A stretch of DNA of 64,000 bases, from assembly GCA_900088475.1 (NCBI GenBank), contig FLMG01000368.1, forward strand, positions 62,001 to 126,000. The letters are read 5' to 3'. This document shows positions 33,643 through 45,300 of the stretch, piece after piece; the stretch's first letter is position 1, and every line of letters starts with the position of its first letter. The DNA is from Hyphochytrium catenoides (taxonomy: Eukaryota > Protista > Hyphochytriomycota). The notes beneath the pieces were generated by a model. It had not been told where the DNA came from and did not search any database. It worked only from the letters and a program-made list of their open reading frames with translations. Both the position numbers and the translations under genes were made by a program.

Positions 33643-33746
33643 GAAGGGAGACACAACGCAGGGTTGGCCCAGCTCCCAGCGCATTGCATTAGAAGAAGGG
33701 AGACACAACGCAGGGTTGGCCCAGCTCCCAGCGCATCGCATTAGAA
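33643..33746 (+). repeat. Tandem duplication, 52 bp x 2, one mismatch
   Basis: GAAGGGAGACACAACGCAGGGTTGGCCCAGCTCCCAGCGCAT(T/C)GCATTAGAA starts at 33643 and again at 33695. Confidence 0.95.
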
Positions 33747-34058
33747 GAGAGAAGATGCTCTCTGTCAAAAAGAATAGTCAAAGAGGTAAACCACTTCTAT
33801 CTGGAAGCCTGCGGAGAACAGGATGCTGTTCTAGAGGCCCTAAGGCCGCAACGAAGCAATTTATCATTGGTACATGCCCATGCCCTAGATCATCCCTCGT
33901 GTTCACGCTCTCTCGCAGATTTCGGCATTGAAGTTGAGCATGAGTTGACCCAGCTTCTAGGAAGCTCACTAATGGATCCTAAGGCTCAAATCTTGGTCAA
34001 ACGGAGCCCTATTAGCTGAAGGAAGCCGCGCTCCGGGACCGCTCACCTGTTTGACATC

Positions 34059-34628
34059 ATGACGCTAAAGCCTGAGCTCCCCCAAGGGCTAGTCATTGGG
34101 GTTAGTGATGTCTATTCTGCGATTTGAAGGGCGATTTATCTAACACCCGCCTTCAGTGTCTAGCCCGCATCTGTGAGCACAAAGAGTTTAGCAAGCGTGG
34201 TATCGTGGACCTGGAAGTCAACCAAAAAAAAATTAGTGTCCTTCCTTCCATGCTGGATGGCGACAAGGTACTCAAATGCAATCGACACAAACCAGAGCCG
34301 AGACTAAATATCCTCACTCCTGATTGCGCCGGCATGTCCTTCTGCTTGATCCTCTTCCTTCCTTTGTCTTCCTGTGCTTGTGAACCTCGGCGCAACATAT
34401 TATCCCTACCTTCTCTTGATCGAATGCTGTCTAGCACATGCAACCCGTCGAGTTTGATCGGATCTTCAAGCCTGCGGAGGGTACTGTTCTTATGGAGGCT
34501 GGGTAGGCTAGAAGCCCAGAGAATACTTGTCCTAACGGAATGCACTGTTGGGCTTCGCTAATGGTGTTTTCTAAACCTTATAGCCCATTGTCCATTAACA
34601 ATCCACACATCTGCCTCCTTCTCCTCTC

Positions 34629-34663
<35 letters not shown>

Positions 34664-37600
34664 TGTTCTACTTTTTCTTTCGGGTCGCCACTCTGATCCC
34701 GCTAACTGCTGCTTGAAAACAGCTTCAAGACTATAGTGGATTCCTTGCTGGAAGGTGTCAACTGTAGCATCATTGTCGTAGGCTCATCCGCCACAGACAA
34801 GGACAACGTGACTGAAGGCTATGTAACGGAGGATGGAGACAAAAAGGACGGTCTCATCTCCTGCTTGGTGTCCCAAATCTTTGCTGCCATTGACAAGAAA
34901 GTTGAAGGGTTTGGGAAGAAGGCGCCATTCTATGAGTCCACCGTCGGTGCCGGTTTTGTCGAGTGCTATGATGAGGTCATCAATGTATGTAACACCCTTC
35001 TGATACCTGCTTCAGGTCCTATACACATGGCAGGCCCTTCTCCTACACTCATTTTCTATCTTGACGTCTGTTACCTATGAATGGTCTTAACGCAGGGCTT
35101 CTTCATGTGCAGGACCTTCTACAGCCACAAAGTCGGAACCTGAGAGTGGTTGAGGACGAGACGTATGGGGTGAGTTACTCATCCGTGAGAGATTCGTTTC
35201 AGTCTATTAAAGTCGCCTCCTCTGTCCTATTACCTCAATGGCCTTTCGGCCTTCGGCACTTTCGCTCCCAGATCCACCCCCTGGGAGAAACGATTCGTAC
35301 TGGGAGCCGTGAAGTCATTCAGACAGTGGTAGAGACCGGTCGGGCAAATCGGGACAAGGCTACTGGCATGCATGGACCAGTGCGCACGCATGCCGCTTCT
35401 CTATTTAAGCTCATCATATCACAGACTTTGAAGGAGGGTCTGGTCCCAGGACAAACATACGACTTGAAGCTAGCATCCACGCTGTTAGTGGTCAATTTGC
35501 CGTGCTCGGAAAAGCTAGCTATTCCTCCCTCTAGTCTGAGGTAGGTCGCTTCACTGCCTGCTATCCCGCCGTCCAAGCGTGACTAGCTCCCGCGTCCTTC
35601 CCTGTTACCTTCCATCTTCTCACCTTCCTTTGGTCTTTGCCTTCAGTTCCCGCAATACTATTTTCGCTCTGCCACATCTTCATCTTCCGTCTCGATCTCT
35701 TTTTCCTTCAGTCACTATCTCATTGGCTCATTAACCCTCAATGCGCCCACAGGCTGAAGGAAGGTCCGACCTTGAACAAGACGATGCTCACACTGCGTAC
35801 CATCTGCGAGCACATCAGCCGGCAAGGGCTAGACTTTGCTCCCTTTTCCTCTTCGAAGATGACGCATCTCATGCAGGTTTTTGTTCATTTCGTACCTCTA
35901 TCTGCTCCTTTTTGGCTTTGGTCGCAAAACTTACTCCCGTTATTATTGTTTGATATATATCCCCGTCTCCGTCGTCTTTACCTTCTCAATCGTCTTTACC
36001 TTTTCATTATCTGCGCTTTGCACCGGTCCCACCGCTGTAGGACTCGTTGGGTGGAAACAGCATCACGGCCTGTCTAGCCTTCTTAGCCAACGGCGACTCT
36101 GTCGGGTCTTATGAGACGCTCCGACTGGTAAACTTGATGCAGGCTCTGACCACTTTCCCGGTTGTCAATGATGAAATGGTCCAAGGTGAGTCAGACCTAT
36201 GGAGTGAAACTTGGTAAAACCAAGTGGCTACGCCTGTGAGGGAGCTGAAAGGTGTTAGCGGGAGAAAAACACGAGCAGGGAGGAAATCATCAAGAAGAAG
36301 AGAAACAAAGATTGGTCTTGAACAAGAGACAAACAAGAATCCAAACCAGGGCTGCATGGCCTTGTCTTATCGACTGTATTTTTACTCTTGTGAAGATCCT
36401 TCCAGAAGTTGATGCCTTGTCCTCTTTCTTGCCGTGGTGATCTTGCCTTTGGCTCCCAGTAAAGGCAGCCGAGCTAACCTTCTCTTCTCTTGAGGCCTTC
36501 TCCGTCGTCATCGGCTAGAGGTCATTGGTATTAGAGACGAGATGGAGAGCTTGCGAACTGGCAACAATACCAAGGAGATCAGTGATGATGAGCTTATGCA
36601 GCGAATTACTGAGCTGGAGGGCAAACAAGTCTCTACCAAGATGGAGAAGCTCAAGGTCACACAGGAAAGGTATGCCCCAGCCGGAGACCGATGAGAAGAC
36701 CACGAAGGGGGGACTTGATCAGAAGACCAGGATGTAGTAAGCTTCTATCGATGAAGAGAAAACTGAACTGCCAAGTGGCTACGGGTTGAGCCATCTTGAA
36801 GTTCCCGTACATGACGGACAAGTCCGACCTACCCTGTTCAGTTGATGCGATCTTAGATATCTCTATCTGCTATTTACCTTGGCTGGCTGAGCTTATAGTT
36901 TGAACCCCTTGCCTTGGTAGGGAAGCACTGTCGGAGAAGCTGCTGGCACTGAAGCGGAAGTACCAGGCACTCGTTCAAAGTAAAATGGACGTGCAAAACG
37001 AGCTCATCCAAAGTGAGGAAGAGAAGCTGCGCCTCTCAAGGGCACTGCTTGATCTCCAGATGCAAAGTGTGCAAATGAAGGAGAAATGGGAAAAAGAGGT
37101 GAGTTGAAAGATCGATGGGATAAAGCACCCGAAAGAAGGAGGACTAAAATAGAGTCTACTCCCTAGCTGCATTTACCGTGTCTCGCAAATCCTAAGTCTT
37201 ATCCCTATCAGTTTCGGCATCTGGCACTGATCCTAGCACCTTCCTACCCAGTTATTAATTCTCTGTTTAACCTGCTTGCTCGTTGTCCTCTTCCTCCCTC
37301 TCCACTCTCACTTAATACTACCTTCGACAGAAATACGAGTTGGTGTCAAAGCTGTTGAACGCTGAGAATGATATTCTGGAGCTGGAGCAGAAGGAGCAGA
37401 ACAAAGAGAAAAATACGTCTGAGGTTCAGCTAAGGCTGCAGGAAGAGATGGCAGAAAGGTAAGAAGGGAAACAGCTCGGTTTGATCCGCTAGAATTGGGA
37501 GCTTAGATCTGAGAGAACGCACGATGCAAAGGTGCATTGGTCTCACGGGAAAGGCATGAACGCAAGGGGCTTAGGTTTATAGGACTCTCGGAGTAATTTG

Positions 37601-40600
37601 ACCACCGAGGCCATCCCAATAGTTGAAAAGGGCCGCAACCATGCGAAGCGGCCGGCGGTGGAGAGCAGGCACACTCAAACGTCGTCCTTCTCCGATCTTA
37701 CGCACACTTTAGGAAAGGACTTGCCATGGAGTTTATTGCTCTAAAGACAAACTTCATGAACCTCACTGCGTCTGCGCAGCAAGAGAAGCTCAAGAACAAA
37801 GAGCTGGCGGAGGAGCTACTGACTGTCATAAACCAGAAGCAGGCAATCTACCTTTCTCAATAGACCTCTCTTTTGGGGTTTGCTCCTTTAATGAAGCTCT
37901 TATCGCTTTTGTCTGCCCGTTTTCCCTTCAGCTGCTTTGAGTGTAGCCTAACATGCCTCCTTTTGTCCTCCTTCCTCTAGGTGCTTTCTCGACAAAATGA
38001 GGACTTGGAGCGCTCTCTCCAGACCCTCAAGGGTCAGGTGGCAGAGGCCAAGGGGGAGGTAGAGGCGCTTAGAGTCGGTAAGGAGGAGATGGCGTCGGAA
38101 GTCAAGCACCAGGCTGAAGCTACAGAGACACTCAAACGAGAAAAGGCCAAGGTTGGTTGTTGCAGGAGGACCGACATCTCTCTTTCTCCTGTTACTTTGT
38201 CCTCCTTTCTTTGACAGTATTTTTTCTCTCGTTTGACCTACTCTCTCCTATTCACATATAATGCAAACATGCTCTTGACTTCTCTGATGGCTTTTCCTAC
38301 TCGGCTGACCGCCTCTCGTAGCTGGAGCTTCAGCTGGAAGCAGCTACTCTCGAGTTCCAGAGTCGAAAGCTGGAATATGACAAGACCTCAATGGATCAGA
38401 GCAGAGAGAAGGATAGTGAAGCGCAATTGGTGCGAAAGGCGATGGAGGGAGAGTATAAGAAACTTAGTCAGGAAAGAGAGGCTCTTGTCAAGAAACTCAA
38501 AGAGGTATACTTACTCTCGAGCTACCAAGTCTCGTATCCAGTCCCGCTGGCACTTCATCCTCTTGTGTGTATAGGACCTTTACGTATGTGAGGGTGTTTC
38601 TTGTGGCTACATCGCTGCTTATCCGGCTGTGCTTGTGCCTTTCTTTCTCGCTCTCTTTCGCTTCCTCTCGGTATCTCTTCAAGCCTGGAGTCTCCGTCTC
38701 TGCCCCTGACTTTCTGGGTGTCTCTTCCTTGCCTCCCTTTTGCGCTGTATATGACTTCTCTCACATGTCCTGCAAATACTAAAACGATTTGTCTTCATGC
38801 GTATAACGTCCACCTCTATCCCACAGGCGGAAACAGAGAGTCGCTCGCGTCAGCGGCGAATTACCGAACTGGAGACAGCTATGGCCCGAAAGAGTGAGGA
38901 TGTTTTGGAACTAACTGGGAAGGCAGCAGCGCTAGGAGAGTCACTCAACTCACTGCAAGAGAGCTATAGATTGAAGCTGTTGCACTTTCTCACGAGTGAT
39001 GAGGAGGGAAACAAGGCTAAAGAGAACGTAAGGGAAGCTAGAGCCATGACGCCAGGTAAGAAAGAAAGCGTCCCTCTTTGTCTCGCCCATCCTCCTTGTT
39101 TTCTGCCTGGCCCTTCTGCATTGGCGGTTGGTCTTCGTCTCTAGCGTTTTCATGAGATTCTTGTTGTTCCTCTCTTTGATGTCATGGTTTTCGGCTTCCT
39201 GCTTCCTGCTTTGGGTGCTCTGAGCAATGGTTATCCCACTTCGAGAAGTAGATACATCATCACCTCTCTTTTTCTGATATTTAATTCGATATGTTGGACC
39301 AGCTGGAGAGACATCTGCCAGTGGCAACTCAATTCCCGCAGCCTGGGCGAAGTATGCATCCGAGGCCAAGGAGGGCAAAGCGGAGGCATCCGCGAATGTG
39401 CAGCGCCAGGAGCTGTTGAAGGAGCTAACGCTCACCTACAAGGCCAAGGAAGTAGAGCTCCAGGCTGCACTAGAGAGGTACTCGTAGGACTGTTTCAGGA
39501 CATTAGACAAGATACATTTCTTGCTAAATAGCCGCTTGCTCTCTAATACTCTCTCTTCCTGCCTCCAAGTAATTCTGNNNNNNNNNNNNNNNNNNNNNNN
39601 NNNNNNNNNNNNNNNNNNNNNNNNNNNNNNNNNNCGGACAAAAGTATCCTTTTATCTTTCCCATTGGTCACACATGTGTCTCATGGTGTTCGCGTTGCGG
39701 TGTAGTCTACGTGCCAAGAACAGTGAGGTGACGCGTAAGAATCGATTGCTCTACGAAACCTTCGAGAAGATGAAGTATGTGCTAGAAGACCAGGTATTGG
39801 CAATTTTTCCACCCCTTGTCTCTGATGCTCTTGTTATGCCCATTGTCGGGCCCTAATGGCTCGAAAAGCAGATGCCTTGATCATTACCTCCAAACATCTT
39901 CCCTAATCTGAAGGTGATTCCTCTATTCTGTTGTCCCTCAAAATAAATGAGAGAGCTTCATCTTTCTCCGTTGCCTAATGAGAATCTCTTCTGTTGCTTT
40001 CCTGATAATCATCATTCGCTTGGTCAACGCGACTCTGCAGAACTCGGGAGAGAAGCTACCCAATTTACCTCCGGAAAGCGAGCTGAAGGCGGCTGGGCCT
40101 ACTGAGCTAGAGGCAGAGATGGAGAGAGAAATTGTATGTCTCAAGAAATTGTCTTCTTGGACCTTTCTTCTCTTCGCTTACCGTTTTCTTACGAAGTTTC
40201 CCTTTTTGCCCTGTATATCAATGAATGGATTCCATAGTTTTCCTGCTACTTCTGCTTCTGAAAGAGCTTTGATGGCGGATTTTGATCTCGCCCCTACTTG
40301 GGCGGGGCATTTATACATCTGTTGGCTCTAGCTTCTTAGTGCTTACACTCCTCTTCCCATCTTTATTATCGGCATCATTGACCGGGCACCTCTTTGCAGA
40401 CCATTCTTAGGGAGAAAGCTCGCCACTTGCAGGCTGAAGTTTCAATGCAGCAAGAGAAAGGGCTTCAAATGGCCGAACAGTTCAAAGGGACCGTCTCAGG
40501 GCTAGAGGTAGAGGATCGTTTTGTGCTTTTCTCCATGCACTGCCGTCACATCAGCCTTTTGGGTTACTTTTTGCCTCTGCTTGCCTCAATAACGTAGTGT

Positions 40601-42146
40601 TTCACAATGGCCTTGCTTCTCACATACCGCACACTGCAGGCGCGCTGTGCGAAGTTGAACAACCAAGTGGAAAGTCTTAGAGAAGAGAATAAACGACTGT
40701 TCGGGGATCTTAGTCGCTTCGGTAAGCAAGGCGTCCAGACCGTTTCTCCTGCACTCAGCTCGTGTTACTTTTGATGGCTTGGTCGCCCTCTGAGCAAGGT
40801 GTTGAGGGAGTTCTTCCCCCTTTCCCGCTGCTTTCTAGCGGGTGGATGCCTTCCTGCTCATGTGACGGCCAGCTTTTCACGCTCTCTTTCCTGGTGGTCT
40901 GATGAGCTGTGTCTCTCTCCCTTCCACAACCTCCTTGTGCAGGGAACAATGAGAGAGGTTCAGACCCGGAGACCCTAAAGGAGCTGAAAGAACTGCAAAA
41001 GACCGTTCTGAGTCAGCTTGAAGAGATCAAACAGCACCGACCAGGTTCACGATTTCATTCTCTCTCAACTGTCCAGCTATCCTGTGTCTATGCCCGCCAA
41101 CTATCCTACTTCCGCCGCACTGCCGTTTGGAGCATAGCTCTTCTATGATCCACTCGGCTAAGATTTGACCCTTTTTCAAGGTCCTCGCATGCGAAGTAAT
41201 CTCATTTGCCCTAGAGCACTTACTGTTTCCAACTCATCTCTTTCTCTGTGTAACAAAGTTCATTGATGCTCGCGAATAGTCTCCTAATGATCTTGCCATG
41301 CCATTTCTTTAGCTGGTTCTTCAGCTGGCGCTAACCACGACCGGCAAGAAAGAAGTCCCAAGAATGAGAGGGAGACGGAAGAGCTCAGAAGAAAATTGAA
41401 GAGACTAGAAGAAGAGAATGAAGGGCTCCGGTCCGAGAATAGCAAGCTCCATAGCGATATGGAAGGGCTGAAGACAAGAAGACCCTCAAACGCTCCGTCT
41501 GGGGCCGCTCAGCAGGGAGATGACGGACAGGTAGAGGCTGCTCGATCGCTCTCTTTCGGTGATTGCACTTCCATATTGAAGTCCTGGCATTCTGTCATAT
41601 TCAAACTTCTGAGATGCACATATTCAATGCTGCCCATCCTTCGGGAAGAAGAAATATCCTGCGCAACTCGTTTATCCCTTACCCCCTCTTTCCTATCTAC
41701 AGAAGAAGCGTATTGAAGAGCTCCAGAAGGAGAATAGCAGCCTCAGGACAAAGCTTCGGGAGCACGAAAACGTGGCAAGGGTGAGACGCTTACGGCCAGC
41801 CAAATACTCGGAGAGACCCCCGCACTGGCTGACGAGAATTCTTCGCGTCGTGGTCCCCTGTTGGTTCTCCCCTGCTTCTTGTCTAGGACAAAACCTCTAT
41901 GGCTGGATTGGATGAGAATCAAAAGTTTGCCAAGTATGTCTCTCAGGTCGCCATGCTGGAAGAGGAATTAGAGCAAACCAAGAAGTTCCTAAAGGTCCGG
42001 TGCCTATTTCTTTCTTCCTTTCCTATCACCGCCTCAAATGACTCGATTTTCCCCACCTTGCTATAAACTGACTCTGCCAGGCGACTACTGTCAAGCTCAC
42101 CAAGAGAATAAAGGACCTGGAAGCTGAGTTAGCAAAAGCAAAATGA
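34059..42146 (+). CDS. Kinesin-like protein with degenerate motor domain and CCDC78/DUF4472-like coiled-coil tail, more than 20 exons
   Basis: Kinesin scaffold motifs EFDRIF, LLEGVNCSI, VECYDEVIN|DLL, RLKEGPTLNK, SKMTHLMQ|DSLGGNS, PVVN. Tail SEEEKLRLSRALLDLQ...KYELVSKLLNAENDILELE. ATG at 34059, TGA at 42144-42146. Confidence 0.85.
34629..34663 (+). repeat. (TCTG)n tetranucleotide microsatellite in a kinesin intron
   Basis: About 8 consecutive TCTG units. Confidence 0.9.
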
Positions 42147-42354: not shown

Positions 42355-45300
42355 TTAGTATTTAGCCAGATACTTCTGCAGCAGCGCCGTCGTGGAGGAG
42401 TTGAAGCCCTGGATGGACCCAGTTTCTGCACCTCCTGTCCCCCTGCTTTGCTGCAACTGGCCCCTGACTTTTTTGGCTAGGACCTTTCCAAGCTCCACGC
42501 CCCATTGGTCAAAGGAGTTGATGTTCCAGATGAGCCCTTGCACAGCGGTCCGGTGCTCATACAAGGCGAGCAGTTGTCCTGTGCTATATGCATCCAGGCG
42601 CTGGAAGAGAATTGAAAGAGAAGGACGATTGCCAGGGAAGAACTGTAGCAATTGAGTTAGTATATATGTCATGCCAGCTGCTGCAGTTTTGGCTGTTGGT
42701 ATGCCTCTTATACTCTTACTTCCTAGTCCTGTGGCCCTTATGTACCAATAAATTCTCTTTATTAGACCATCCCTTGTAAGTCTGCCGTTACCTAGTATTC
42801 GCCTTCGTCCCATTCTCTGGCACTTCTCAATCCTTCAGCAGTATCCCCACTCTCACCTTGTGCGGGCGGAGCTCCTCAGGAACGCCTTCCTTCTCCAATT
42901 CCTCCATGGTCTTTCCATATGCGAGCGCATCGGGTTGCGCAAAGAAGTTTGACATCAACTCATCATGGTTGGATACCGCCTGCCAGTAACGAAACGGTCG
43001 GAAGTGTCAACTCTTACGTTCAAAAGGGCTAAAAAAGACGGTGACATTGCTATCGCCCTCGGGGAGAGGTCAGGTCATAAACTATTATGAAAGGTCCCTA
43101 GTTACCTGTCCGGGAAGCTTGATAGGCTCTTGAGACACTGCATACCCGATGAAGTCCGCTGGAATGACTCTTCCTTGGTGAATCAGCTGATAGAAGGAGT
43201 GCTGTCCATTTGTTCCAGGTTCTCCAAAGTTGATCTCTCCCGCTTCAAACTTCAGCTCCCTCCCTTCTCTATCGACTCTTTTCCCGTTGCTTTCCATGTC
43301 CACTTGCTGGATGTGCGCAGGGAAGCGGAGAAGTGCCTGAGAATAAGGCAGCAGAGCCCTAGCGGCATGCCCTAGGAAAGAGGAATTCCAGACACCAACA
43401 AGGCCCATAACGACTGGTATGTTGTTTCTGAGTGGTGCAGAGAGAAGATGCTCGTCTATAGAGGCAGCACCATCCAGGAATTTGCGGAGAATGTCATAAC
43501 CATACTGGATCGAAAGAGGACATACTCCCACCTGAGCACGCATGCAAGGAAAGACGTAAGTAAACGGCCATGAAGTACGCATAAGAGATAGGGATGATCT
43601 AATACAGGCCGAGAGAGGGATATTACTCAGGGCGCCGAGTAGAGCAAGAAAGGAAAACCAATCAGATAATACTAGGTGCGCGGACAGAAGGTGTACACAA
43701 GGGAGTGCACCGAAATGCTTACCGCACTGCAGACTGAGTATCGCCCTCCTACCCAGTCCCAGAATCCAAAGACATTTTGGGAGTCTATTCCAAACTCAGA
43801 TGTGAGCTTCAAATTAGTGCTCACAGCGGCCATATGGCGCGCCACTACCGCTTTAGGATCCTGGCCCTTCAGGCCCTGAAGTAGCCAATTCTTCAGGGTG
43901 CTAGCGTTCAACATGGCTGCGAGAAAGAGGGTCCAATAATATTTGACACATGACAGCAAAGGGTGAGTATGATAGGTGATAGACCACGAGCTACGCGTGG
44001 TAAAAATGACACTCCAAACTTCCTTCCCTCCCACACTCCTCCTGTCTGGCTGCACTTATTCTAGATTCCCCTTTGGCCGCCATTGCCCATTGCAAGGCTT
44101 ACAGATAGGTGCCAAGTTAATCAGCAGAAATGGAGGTGCTCTCAAGTGAAGGGGTTTCTCCCGTTCGATCCAACTTACTTTCTGCGGTCGTGAATGTCTT
44201 TGACACGACAATGACAAGGGTCTCCTCGGGATTCAGGTCCTCGGTCGCCCGTGCCACATCTACAGGGTCCACATTTGCCAAAAAACGAAGGCGACGACCT
44301 TCGGCGGCCGCCCGGGCAGCTGGATCGTGTCGCAAAGCCTCATAGACGAACTCTGGGCCCAAGTAGCTCCCGCCAATACCAATCGAGACGACGTTCTTTA
44401 GAGGTTTGCCCGTGACTCCCTATGTGCAAACGCGAGAGAAGTACATATTGTTCAAAAAAATAAATAAAGGAAAGCTATAGTTCAGGATAAATAAATAAAG
44501 GAATGTTTTAGTTCAGGCCGGAAATGATTGTAGATGACGAGGCAATTAAAGGCTGCACACTTCAAAAGGAAGACACATAAGAAAAGCCTCAGTATTGATT
44601 GTAATGTCCGGCAAAGAGAGAATCAGAAGCAGCCCAAGTAAACGAGGAATCCAGACCTTCCAAGATCCTGAACGGATGCTGTTGCTGAAGGCTTGGATTC
44701 TGTCAAGAACTTCATGTACGTCCTTCACTACATTCTTTCCGTCCAGTTTCATGACCTATTATAAGAATGAGACGTCCATCCTGTTAAGCATAGAATCTCT
44801 CCTCCCCGTGGTAGGCTTTTCTGACCTTCTCCTTTGGGGCTCTGAGGGCCATATGGAGGACCGCCCTGTTCTCGGTGTTGTTCCATTTAGCACCGTCAGC
44901 TATGGCTCTCTACACGTCAGGCAAAAGGTGATGGGAGAGATAACGAGTCAGCTGGAGCGGTGTTAGGTAAATAAAGCTTATCATACCAGCTTTTGCTTTA
45001 GCTCTGCGACATCTGCAAGTTCAAATAGTAGGTCCTAGATGGCATATACGGCAAAGAGGAAAGGCTGTTGTGAGGCTCTCTGACCGGTTGCCCACAGTAC
45101 CTTTGCGCGAGGTGAAATAGACATGGTAGACCCTGAGCTACCTCTACCGCACTTTTACCTTACCAGAGTCTCCAAGTTCGCATTCTGCCGGGAGTAGTCC
45201 AGGTAGATACCGTCATGGTCTGCGGTCATCACCTTATTACGCTCCTCATCCTGCGCAGATTTTCTCAATAGCAGTTTAGGCGCTAAATAACAATCTTAAC

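Follow-up and report, generated by a model that had tools for sequence, protein, structure and literature searches.

Can a kinesin head be kept by selection after it has lost every motif by which kinesins handle adenosine triphosphate (ATP)? The question is raised by a gene on contig FLMG01000368.1 of Hyphochytrium catenoides, which lies in a window of 64,000 nucleotides (nt) to which all positions below refer (plus strand unless stated). The gene is predicted to encode a kinesin-like head followed by a coiled-coil tail with the DUF4472 domain of CCDC78. We consider it probable (roughly 0.6) that this is a single gene for a ciliary-tip protein of the kinesin-CCDC78 type represented by I7LVY1 of Tetrahymena, and that its head serves as an ATP-independent microtubule anchor. 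The architecture is already known, and only the dead head is possibly new.

Three forward frames were read between positions 33900 and 42300, and a splice model was built by hand. In this model 25 exons form one open frame of 1,129 codons, from the ATG at 34059 to the TGA at 42144-42146. Introns are pyrimidine-rich and 56 to 318 nt long, 23 of them with GT-AG borders and one with GC-AG borders.

34059-42146, plus strand: whole gene, 25 exons, no internal stop.
34059-34100, 34157-34267, 34435-34502, 34723-34984, 35113-35169, 35272-35540, 35753-35876 and 36041-36185, plus strand: exons 1 to 8.
36495-36669, 36921-37098, 37331-37458, 37713-37842, 37981-38151, 38322-38504, 38827-39055 and 39303-39477, plus strand: exons 9 to 16.
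39706-39793, 40041-40133, 40400-40507, 40640-40721, 40943-41044, 41313-41530, 41703-41780, 41887-41994 and 42081-42146, plus strand: exons 17 to 25.

The kinesin fold of the head was identified with Pfam, scanned exon by exon, and with alignments to structures in PDB. The Kinesin profile (PF00225) matched exon 4 (E 4.1e-6, 26.5 bits, profile positions 64-138) and exon 7 (E 4e-4, 19.9 bits in 41 residues, profile positions 249-289). Together these two colinear matches reach 46.4 bits (cut-off 29.3), and the density of the PF00225 score is highest in exon 7. Exon 6, which carries switches I and II, had no Pfam match at E≤1 and aligned to KIF14 motor structures with an E of 0.007 in the PDB search.

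34059-36185, plus strand: exons 1 to 8, kinesin-fold head, residues 1-360 (PF00225 in exons 4 and 7; exons 4, 6, 7 and 8 aligned to kinesin motors of PDB).
35753-35876, plus strand: exon 7, L11/alpha4/L12 microtubule-binding stretch (RLKEGPTLNKTMLTL ... SKMTHLMQ), matched by PF00225 and aligned to KIF14 residues 270-312.
36041-36185, plus strand: exon 8, alpha5 to alpha6 (DSLGGNS...), followed by the first part of the neck linker (PVVNDEMVQ), aligned to residues 378-421 of the Neurospora kinesin-3 structure 2owm.

The alignments of exons 7 and 8 are close at the residue level: LKEGPTLNKTMLTL of exon 7 lies opposite LKEGVSINKSLLTL of KIF14, and DSLGGNSITA of exon 8 lies opposite DSLGGNSKTA of 2owm. 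Judged from sequence, the microtubule-facing stretch alpha4/L12/alpha5 is the best-kept part of the head. The best PDB matches of exons 6, 7 and 8 were KIF14 and the KIF1C-like motor of Neurospora (kinesin-3), all weak (E 0.007 to 0.9), and those of exon 4 were kinesin-5 structures. No exon had a Pfam match to the FHA domain. Kinesin-17 is a flagellum-restricted and functionally uncharacterized family (PMC2867816), and the head is not assigned to it.

The motifs that serve the nucleotide are altered at all three sites.

34781-34804, plus strand: P-loop, GSSATDKD (canonical GQTGTGKT), from residue-level alignment to cut7 and kinesin-5 structures.
35371-35394, plus strand: switch I, HGPVRTHA (canonical NxxSSRSH), with HGPVRTHAA aligned to NDK-SSRSHS of KIF14.
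35494-35511, plus strand: switch II, NLPCSE (canonical DLAGSE), aligned to KIF14.

An active motor would be expected to carry GxxxxGK[ST] in the P-loop, NxxSSRSH in switch I and DxxGxE in switch II, and none of these three patterns is present. Both P-loop glycines are gone, one replaced by alanine and the other by aspartate, as is the Mg-binding threonine, also replaced by aspartate; switch I lacks the serines and arginine of SSRSH, and switch II has lost its aspartate and glycine. The lysine of the P-loop and the glutamate of switch II are still present. With the residues that hold and sense ATP lost, the head most likely cannot turn over ATP. The two surviving residues would fit a head that is a non-canonical but working nucleotide-binding domain or motor, which we consider highly improbable in view of the replaced glycines and threonine of the P-loop, the missing SSRSH, the replaced aspartate and glycine of switch II and, by inspection rather than alignment, the lack of an RxRP adenine-binding motif near the N terminus. 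A six-frame search found no canonical kinesin motifs in proper order elsewhere in the locus. Off-frame SSRSH (36648-36662, in exon 9) and GRDRSGKS (35328-35351, in exon 6) occur out of order and were judged to be due to chance.

The initial annotation had proposed a kinesin-fold head with all three nucleotide motifs altered and the microtubule-facing segments better kept. The fold is borne out by PF00225 in exons 4 and 7 and by the structure alignments of exons 4, 6, 7 and 8; the altered motifs lie exactly where it had placed them, as the alignments to cut7 and KIF14 confirm; and the better preservation of the microtubule-facing segments agrees with the score density of exon 7 and with the alignments of exons 7 and 8 to KIF14 and 2owm. 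It had also recognized a DUF4472/CCDC78-type tail and named a profile search as the check; run per exon, this search found PF14739 in exons 10, 11 and 12. The matches are colinear (profile positions 1-29, 30-67 and 75-107), and their individual scores of 25.0, 22.3 and 20.5 bits, each under the cut-off of 26.6, sum to 67.8 bits.

36495-36669, plus strand: exon 9, neck and first coiled-coil segment, linking head to tail; enters in phase 1 with a split glycine codon, and the splice phases fit.
37012-37098, 37331-37444 and 37720-37818, plus strand: DUF4472 (CCDC78 domain, PF14739) in three exon pieces.
37981-42146, plus strand: exons 13 to 25, long segmented coiled-coil tail rich in E, K and L, recognized by composition; generic coiled-coil Pfam matches only.

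The coiled coil is interrupted by breaks containing proline or glycine near residues 745-790, 846-866, 940-990 and 1027-1046. Compared with PDB, neck exon 9 and one of the DUF4472 exons gave only chance coiled-coil matches, none of them a kinesin for the neck exon, and a search of the ESM Atlas with exon 10 returned only generic coiled-coil clusters. The neck may resemble that of KIF1A (NEDxxxKLIRELxxEV).

The case for head and tail as one gene centers on exons 8 to 10. Exon 8 has no stop of its own, and exon 9 opens in phase 1 with no in-frame ATG upstream. The spacing between exons 8 and 9 (309 nt) and between exons 9 and 10 (251 nt) is of ordinary intron size, and the splice sites are good. 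In the splice model, head and DUF4472 tail form one uninterrupted chain of exons. Two separate genes, or an additional head-less CCDC78 isoform from an internal start, could be imagined in so compact a genome, where ∼200 nt separate the stop at 42146 and the end of a convergent gene; retention of intron 8 would end the head 10 codons further on, and the first in-frame methionine of the tail is residue 376. We regard this arrangement as improbable, given the missing stop in exon 8, the phase 1 entry of exon 9, the usual size and good splice sites of introns 8 and 9, and the occurrence of the head-plus-tail layout as a single protein in Tetrahymena.

Contigs of three DNA runs (X1, X2 and X3) were compared with the window over positions 34000-39999; run X2 is an older sample from a strain or haplotype ∼1% divergent from the window. 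Of the best 40 of 65 differences in X2, exons (2,447 nt) hold 9 and introns (3,072 nt) hold 31, a skew with a Fisher p of 0.006. Six of these 9 are synonymous and three are conservative (V35I, Q37K and V353I), pN/pS is ∼0.15, and pS is close to the density of differences in introns. All seven insertions or deletions in X2 are intronic. Exon 9 has no differences in X2, and both introns flanking it have insertions or deletions. Around the lost motifs, the codons for V93 (adjoining the P-loop), G215 (within switch I) and L251 (preceding switch II) differ in X2 by synonymous changes. The gene as a whole, and its head with it, appears to be under constraint and not in decay. The pattern of differences also supports the exon map independently, and a kinesin head and a CCDC78 domain in one polypeptide fit both the gene model and the polymorphism. 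The GC-AG intron is a case in point.

37843-37980, plus strand: intron 12, GC-AG, donor CAG|GCAATC, the only junction that keeps the frame.

Two 1-nt deletions in X2, at 37907 and 37920, lie within this intron, which is thus non-coding.

The initial annotation had regarded the fusion as an overlooked module, and this part does not stand: the combination of kinesin and CCDC78 has already been published for Tetrahymena I7LVY1 (PMC10522465, PMC12796433). Legal et al. (2023) described I7LVY1, a protein of 1,066 residues, as a predicted kinesin also with a CCDC78 domain, reported it to be reduced at least four-fold in cilia of FAP256/CEP104 knockouts and proposed that it binds central-pair microtubules in the cap; its UniProt name is “kinesin motor catalytic domain protein,” and KIF16B is the human protein that it matches best, with ∼30% identity (PMC10522465). 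Hong et al. (2025) noted that the Tetrahymena relative has a kinesin motor domain and vertebrate Ccdc78 has none, and that both are located at the ciliary tip; vertebrate CCDC78 bundles microtubules and organizes tip proteins (PMC12796433). The same group has described a further pseudoenzyme located at the ciliary-tip domain (2026 preprint, bioRxiv 10.64898/2026.02.04.703868). We found no discussion of the catalytic state of the I7LVY1 head in PMC10522465, PMC12796433 or other literature.

The Hyphochytrium protein resembles I7LVY1 in its order of domains, a kinesin domain at the N terminus and then a CCDC78/DUF4472 coiled coil, and in its size. A leaning toward kinesin-3 may also be common to the two, as the best human motor for I7LVY1 is KIF16B and the best, if weak, matches of exons 6 to 8 here are KIF14 and the KIF1C-like motor of Neurospora, although exon 4 prefers kinesin-5. 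The comparison with I7LVY1 is drawn from its published description; the head described here has lost all three nucleotide motifs. With vertebrate CCDC78 it shares a DUF4472-containing coiled coil; the vertebrate protein has no head, whereas a kinesin-like head is kept here. Vertebrate CCDC78 is itself associated with microtubules at the tip and functions without any motor activity (PMC12796433).

A mechanism may be proposed for the protein. The kinesin fold, with alpha4/L12/alpha5 as its main microtubule-binding surface, is preserved in residues 1 to 360, and the head would be a static, nucleotide-independent foot on the microtubule, rigor-like rather than a motor. The neck and the segmented coiled coil of ∼770 residues, DUF4472 included, may dimerize the protein and present the CCDC78 module, and the tail, by analogy with vertebrate CCDC78, may act on axonemal microtubules at the distal tip, probably those of the central pair, by bundling or capping them. 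Loss of ATPase, rigor-like binding, dimerization and tip localization are all steps that we infer.

Catalytically inactive members of the kinesin family include KIF26A/B, Smy1 and Vik1/Cik1. Cos2 and VAB-8 are cited as atypical kinesins (PMC2867816). The protein would resemble all of these in the use of a kinesin fold for ATP-independent microtubule binding or scaffolding, and it differs from them in that they have other tails and other cell biology and none is joined to a CCDC78 domain. Vik1 and Cik1, which serve Kar3 as partners, moreover lack even a remnant of the P-loop. They are examples of dead kinesin-like heads paired with live motors, and this precedent would allow the protein to be, as the initial annotation also considered, a regulatory partner of an active kinesin in a heterodimer of the Vik1/Cik1 kind; alternatively, instead of being an anchor at the ciliary tip, it could cross-link microtubules in the cytoplasm or at centrioles, and deuterosomes are also marked by vertebrate CCDC78 (PMC12796433). 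Either role seems distinctly unlikely: no partner was identified, the tail is of the CCDC78 type, and both characterized relatives are found at the ciliary tip (PMC10522465, PMC12796433).

Several points weigh against a single-gene, ATP-independent ciliary-tip anchor of the I7LVY1 type. First, we infer orthology to I7LVY1 from architecture, and the continuity of head and tail from the gene model alone. Second, homologue searches were negative: with exon 4, phmmer run exhaustively over 1.84 billion representatives found no relative; a word-indexed search with the reading frame of exons 5 and 6 found nothing; and two scans of metagenomes, with exons 6 and 10, gave no relatives confirmed by tblastn, all with exon-sized queries, which are too short for such databases and whose length filters leave out full-length proteins. 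Third, the surviving P-loop lysine may still allow some nucleotide binding. Fourth, the polymorphism counts are small (the best 40 of 65 differences). The sole phmmer match of exon 4, a bacterial DUF5018 repeat protein (P0001), was spurious.

The age of the inactivation is a separate question. In the evolutionary reading of the initial annotation, kinesin-CCDC78 proteins share an ancestor whose head could already have been ATPase-dead, and animals later lost that head. The fusion may well be old, since it is found both in a ciliate and in the present genome, which uses the standard code and is rich in introns; the dead head is under constraint here; and pseudoenzymes recur at the ciliary tip (bioRxiv 10.64898/2026.02.04.703868). 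The UniProt name of I7LVY1 and its ∼30% identity to KIF16B, however, hint at a more canonical head in the ciliate, and the lack of a relative of exon 4 among the 1.84 billion representatives fits fast local divergence. We hold ancestral death of the head to be a tentative possibility, on the unlikely side. A fuller version appears rather doubtful to us, namely, that kinesin-CCDC78 proteins are ancient ciliary-tip pseudokinesins whose head has long clamped the ends of central-pair microtubules in a nucleotide-free, rigor-type manner, and that vertebrate CCDC78 is the same protein after loss of the head, microtubule binding having been taken over by the coiled coil and CCDC33.

The gene indicates that a kinesin head can stay under selection after losing every ATP-handling motif, which argues that the job of the head at the tip is attachment and not transport. 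Vertebrates would then have had a simple route to dispensing with the head. As one divergent gene in one genome, the case is a modest advance alone.

The gene is flanked upstream by a WD40 gene and downstream by a phosphoglucose isomerase gene, both on the minus strand, and its limits are therefore well defined. The phosphoglucose isomerase gene (42355-44055, minus strand) is convergent, with ∼200 nt between its stop codon and that of the kinesin-CCDC78 gene; this spacing points to a compact genome in which 3′ untranslated regions overlap or are very short. A 52-nt unit is duplicated in tandem with one mismatch at 33643-33746, ∼300 nt 5′ of the ATG, within the promoter region that the gene shares, divergently, with the upstream WD40 gene. 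A motif scan found no X-box/RFX motif in the window, and Rfam had no match there.

The assembly has one gap within the gene.

39478-39705, plus strand: intron 16, containing the assembly gap 39578-39634 (57 N).

Contig 23 of run X3 joins 39577 to 39635 on the same strand and colinearly, with 80 letters replacing the 57 N, and contigs of X1 and X2 extend 29 pyrimidine-rich letters into the gap from each side. The true length of intron 16 is thus ∼251 nt. The length of the gap has no bearing on the reading frame, because the codon left open at the end of exon 16 (phase 2) receives its third base from exon 17, and the 80 letters are very unlikely to hide an exon. At a (GTCT)n microsatellite in intron 3 (34619-34670), the contigs of every run break off. 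Deletions of 1 nt at 36051 and 36055, in exon 8, occur in a single low-depth contig of X3 (depth 4.25 of 7.35), are absent in X1 and X2, and are probably read errors. Contigs of run X1 match the window in all but three bases. At 36834 (C>A), 37457 (A>C) and 39247 (A>C), contigs of all three runs differ from the window; these mismatches are likely consensus errors of the assembly, and the change at 37457 is synonymous (AGG to CGG).

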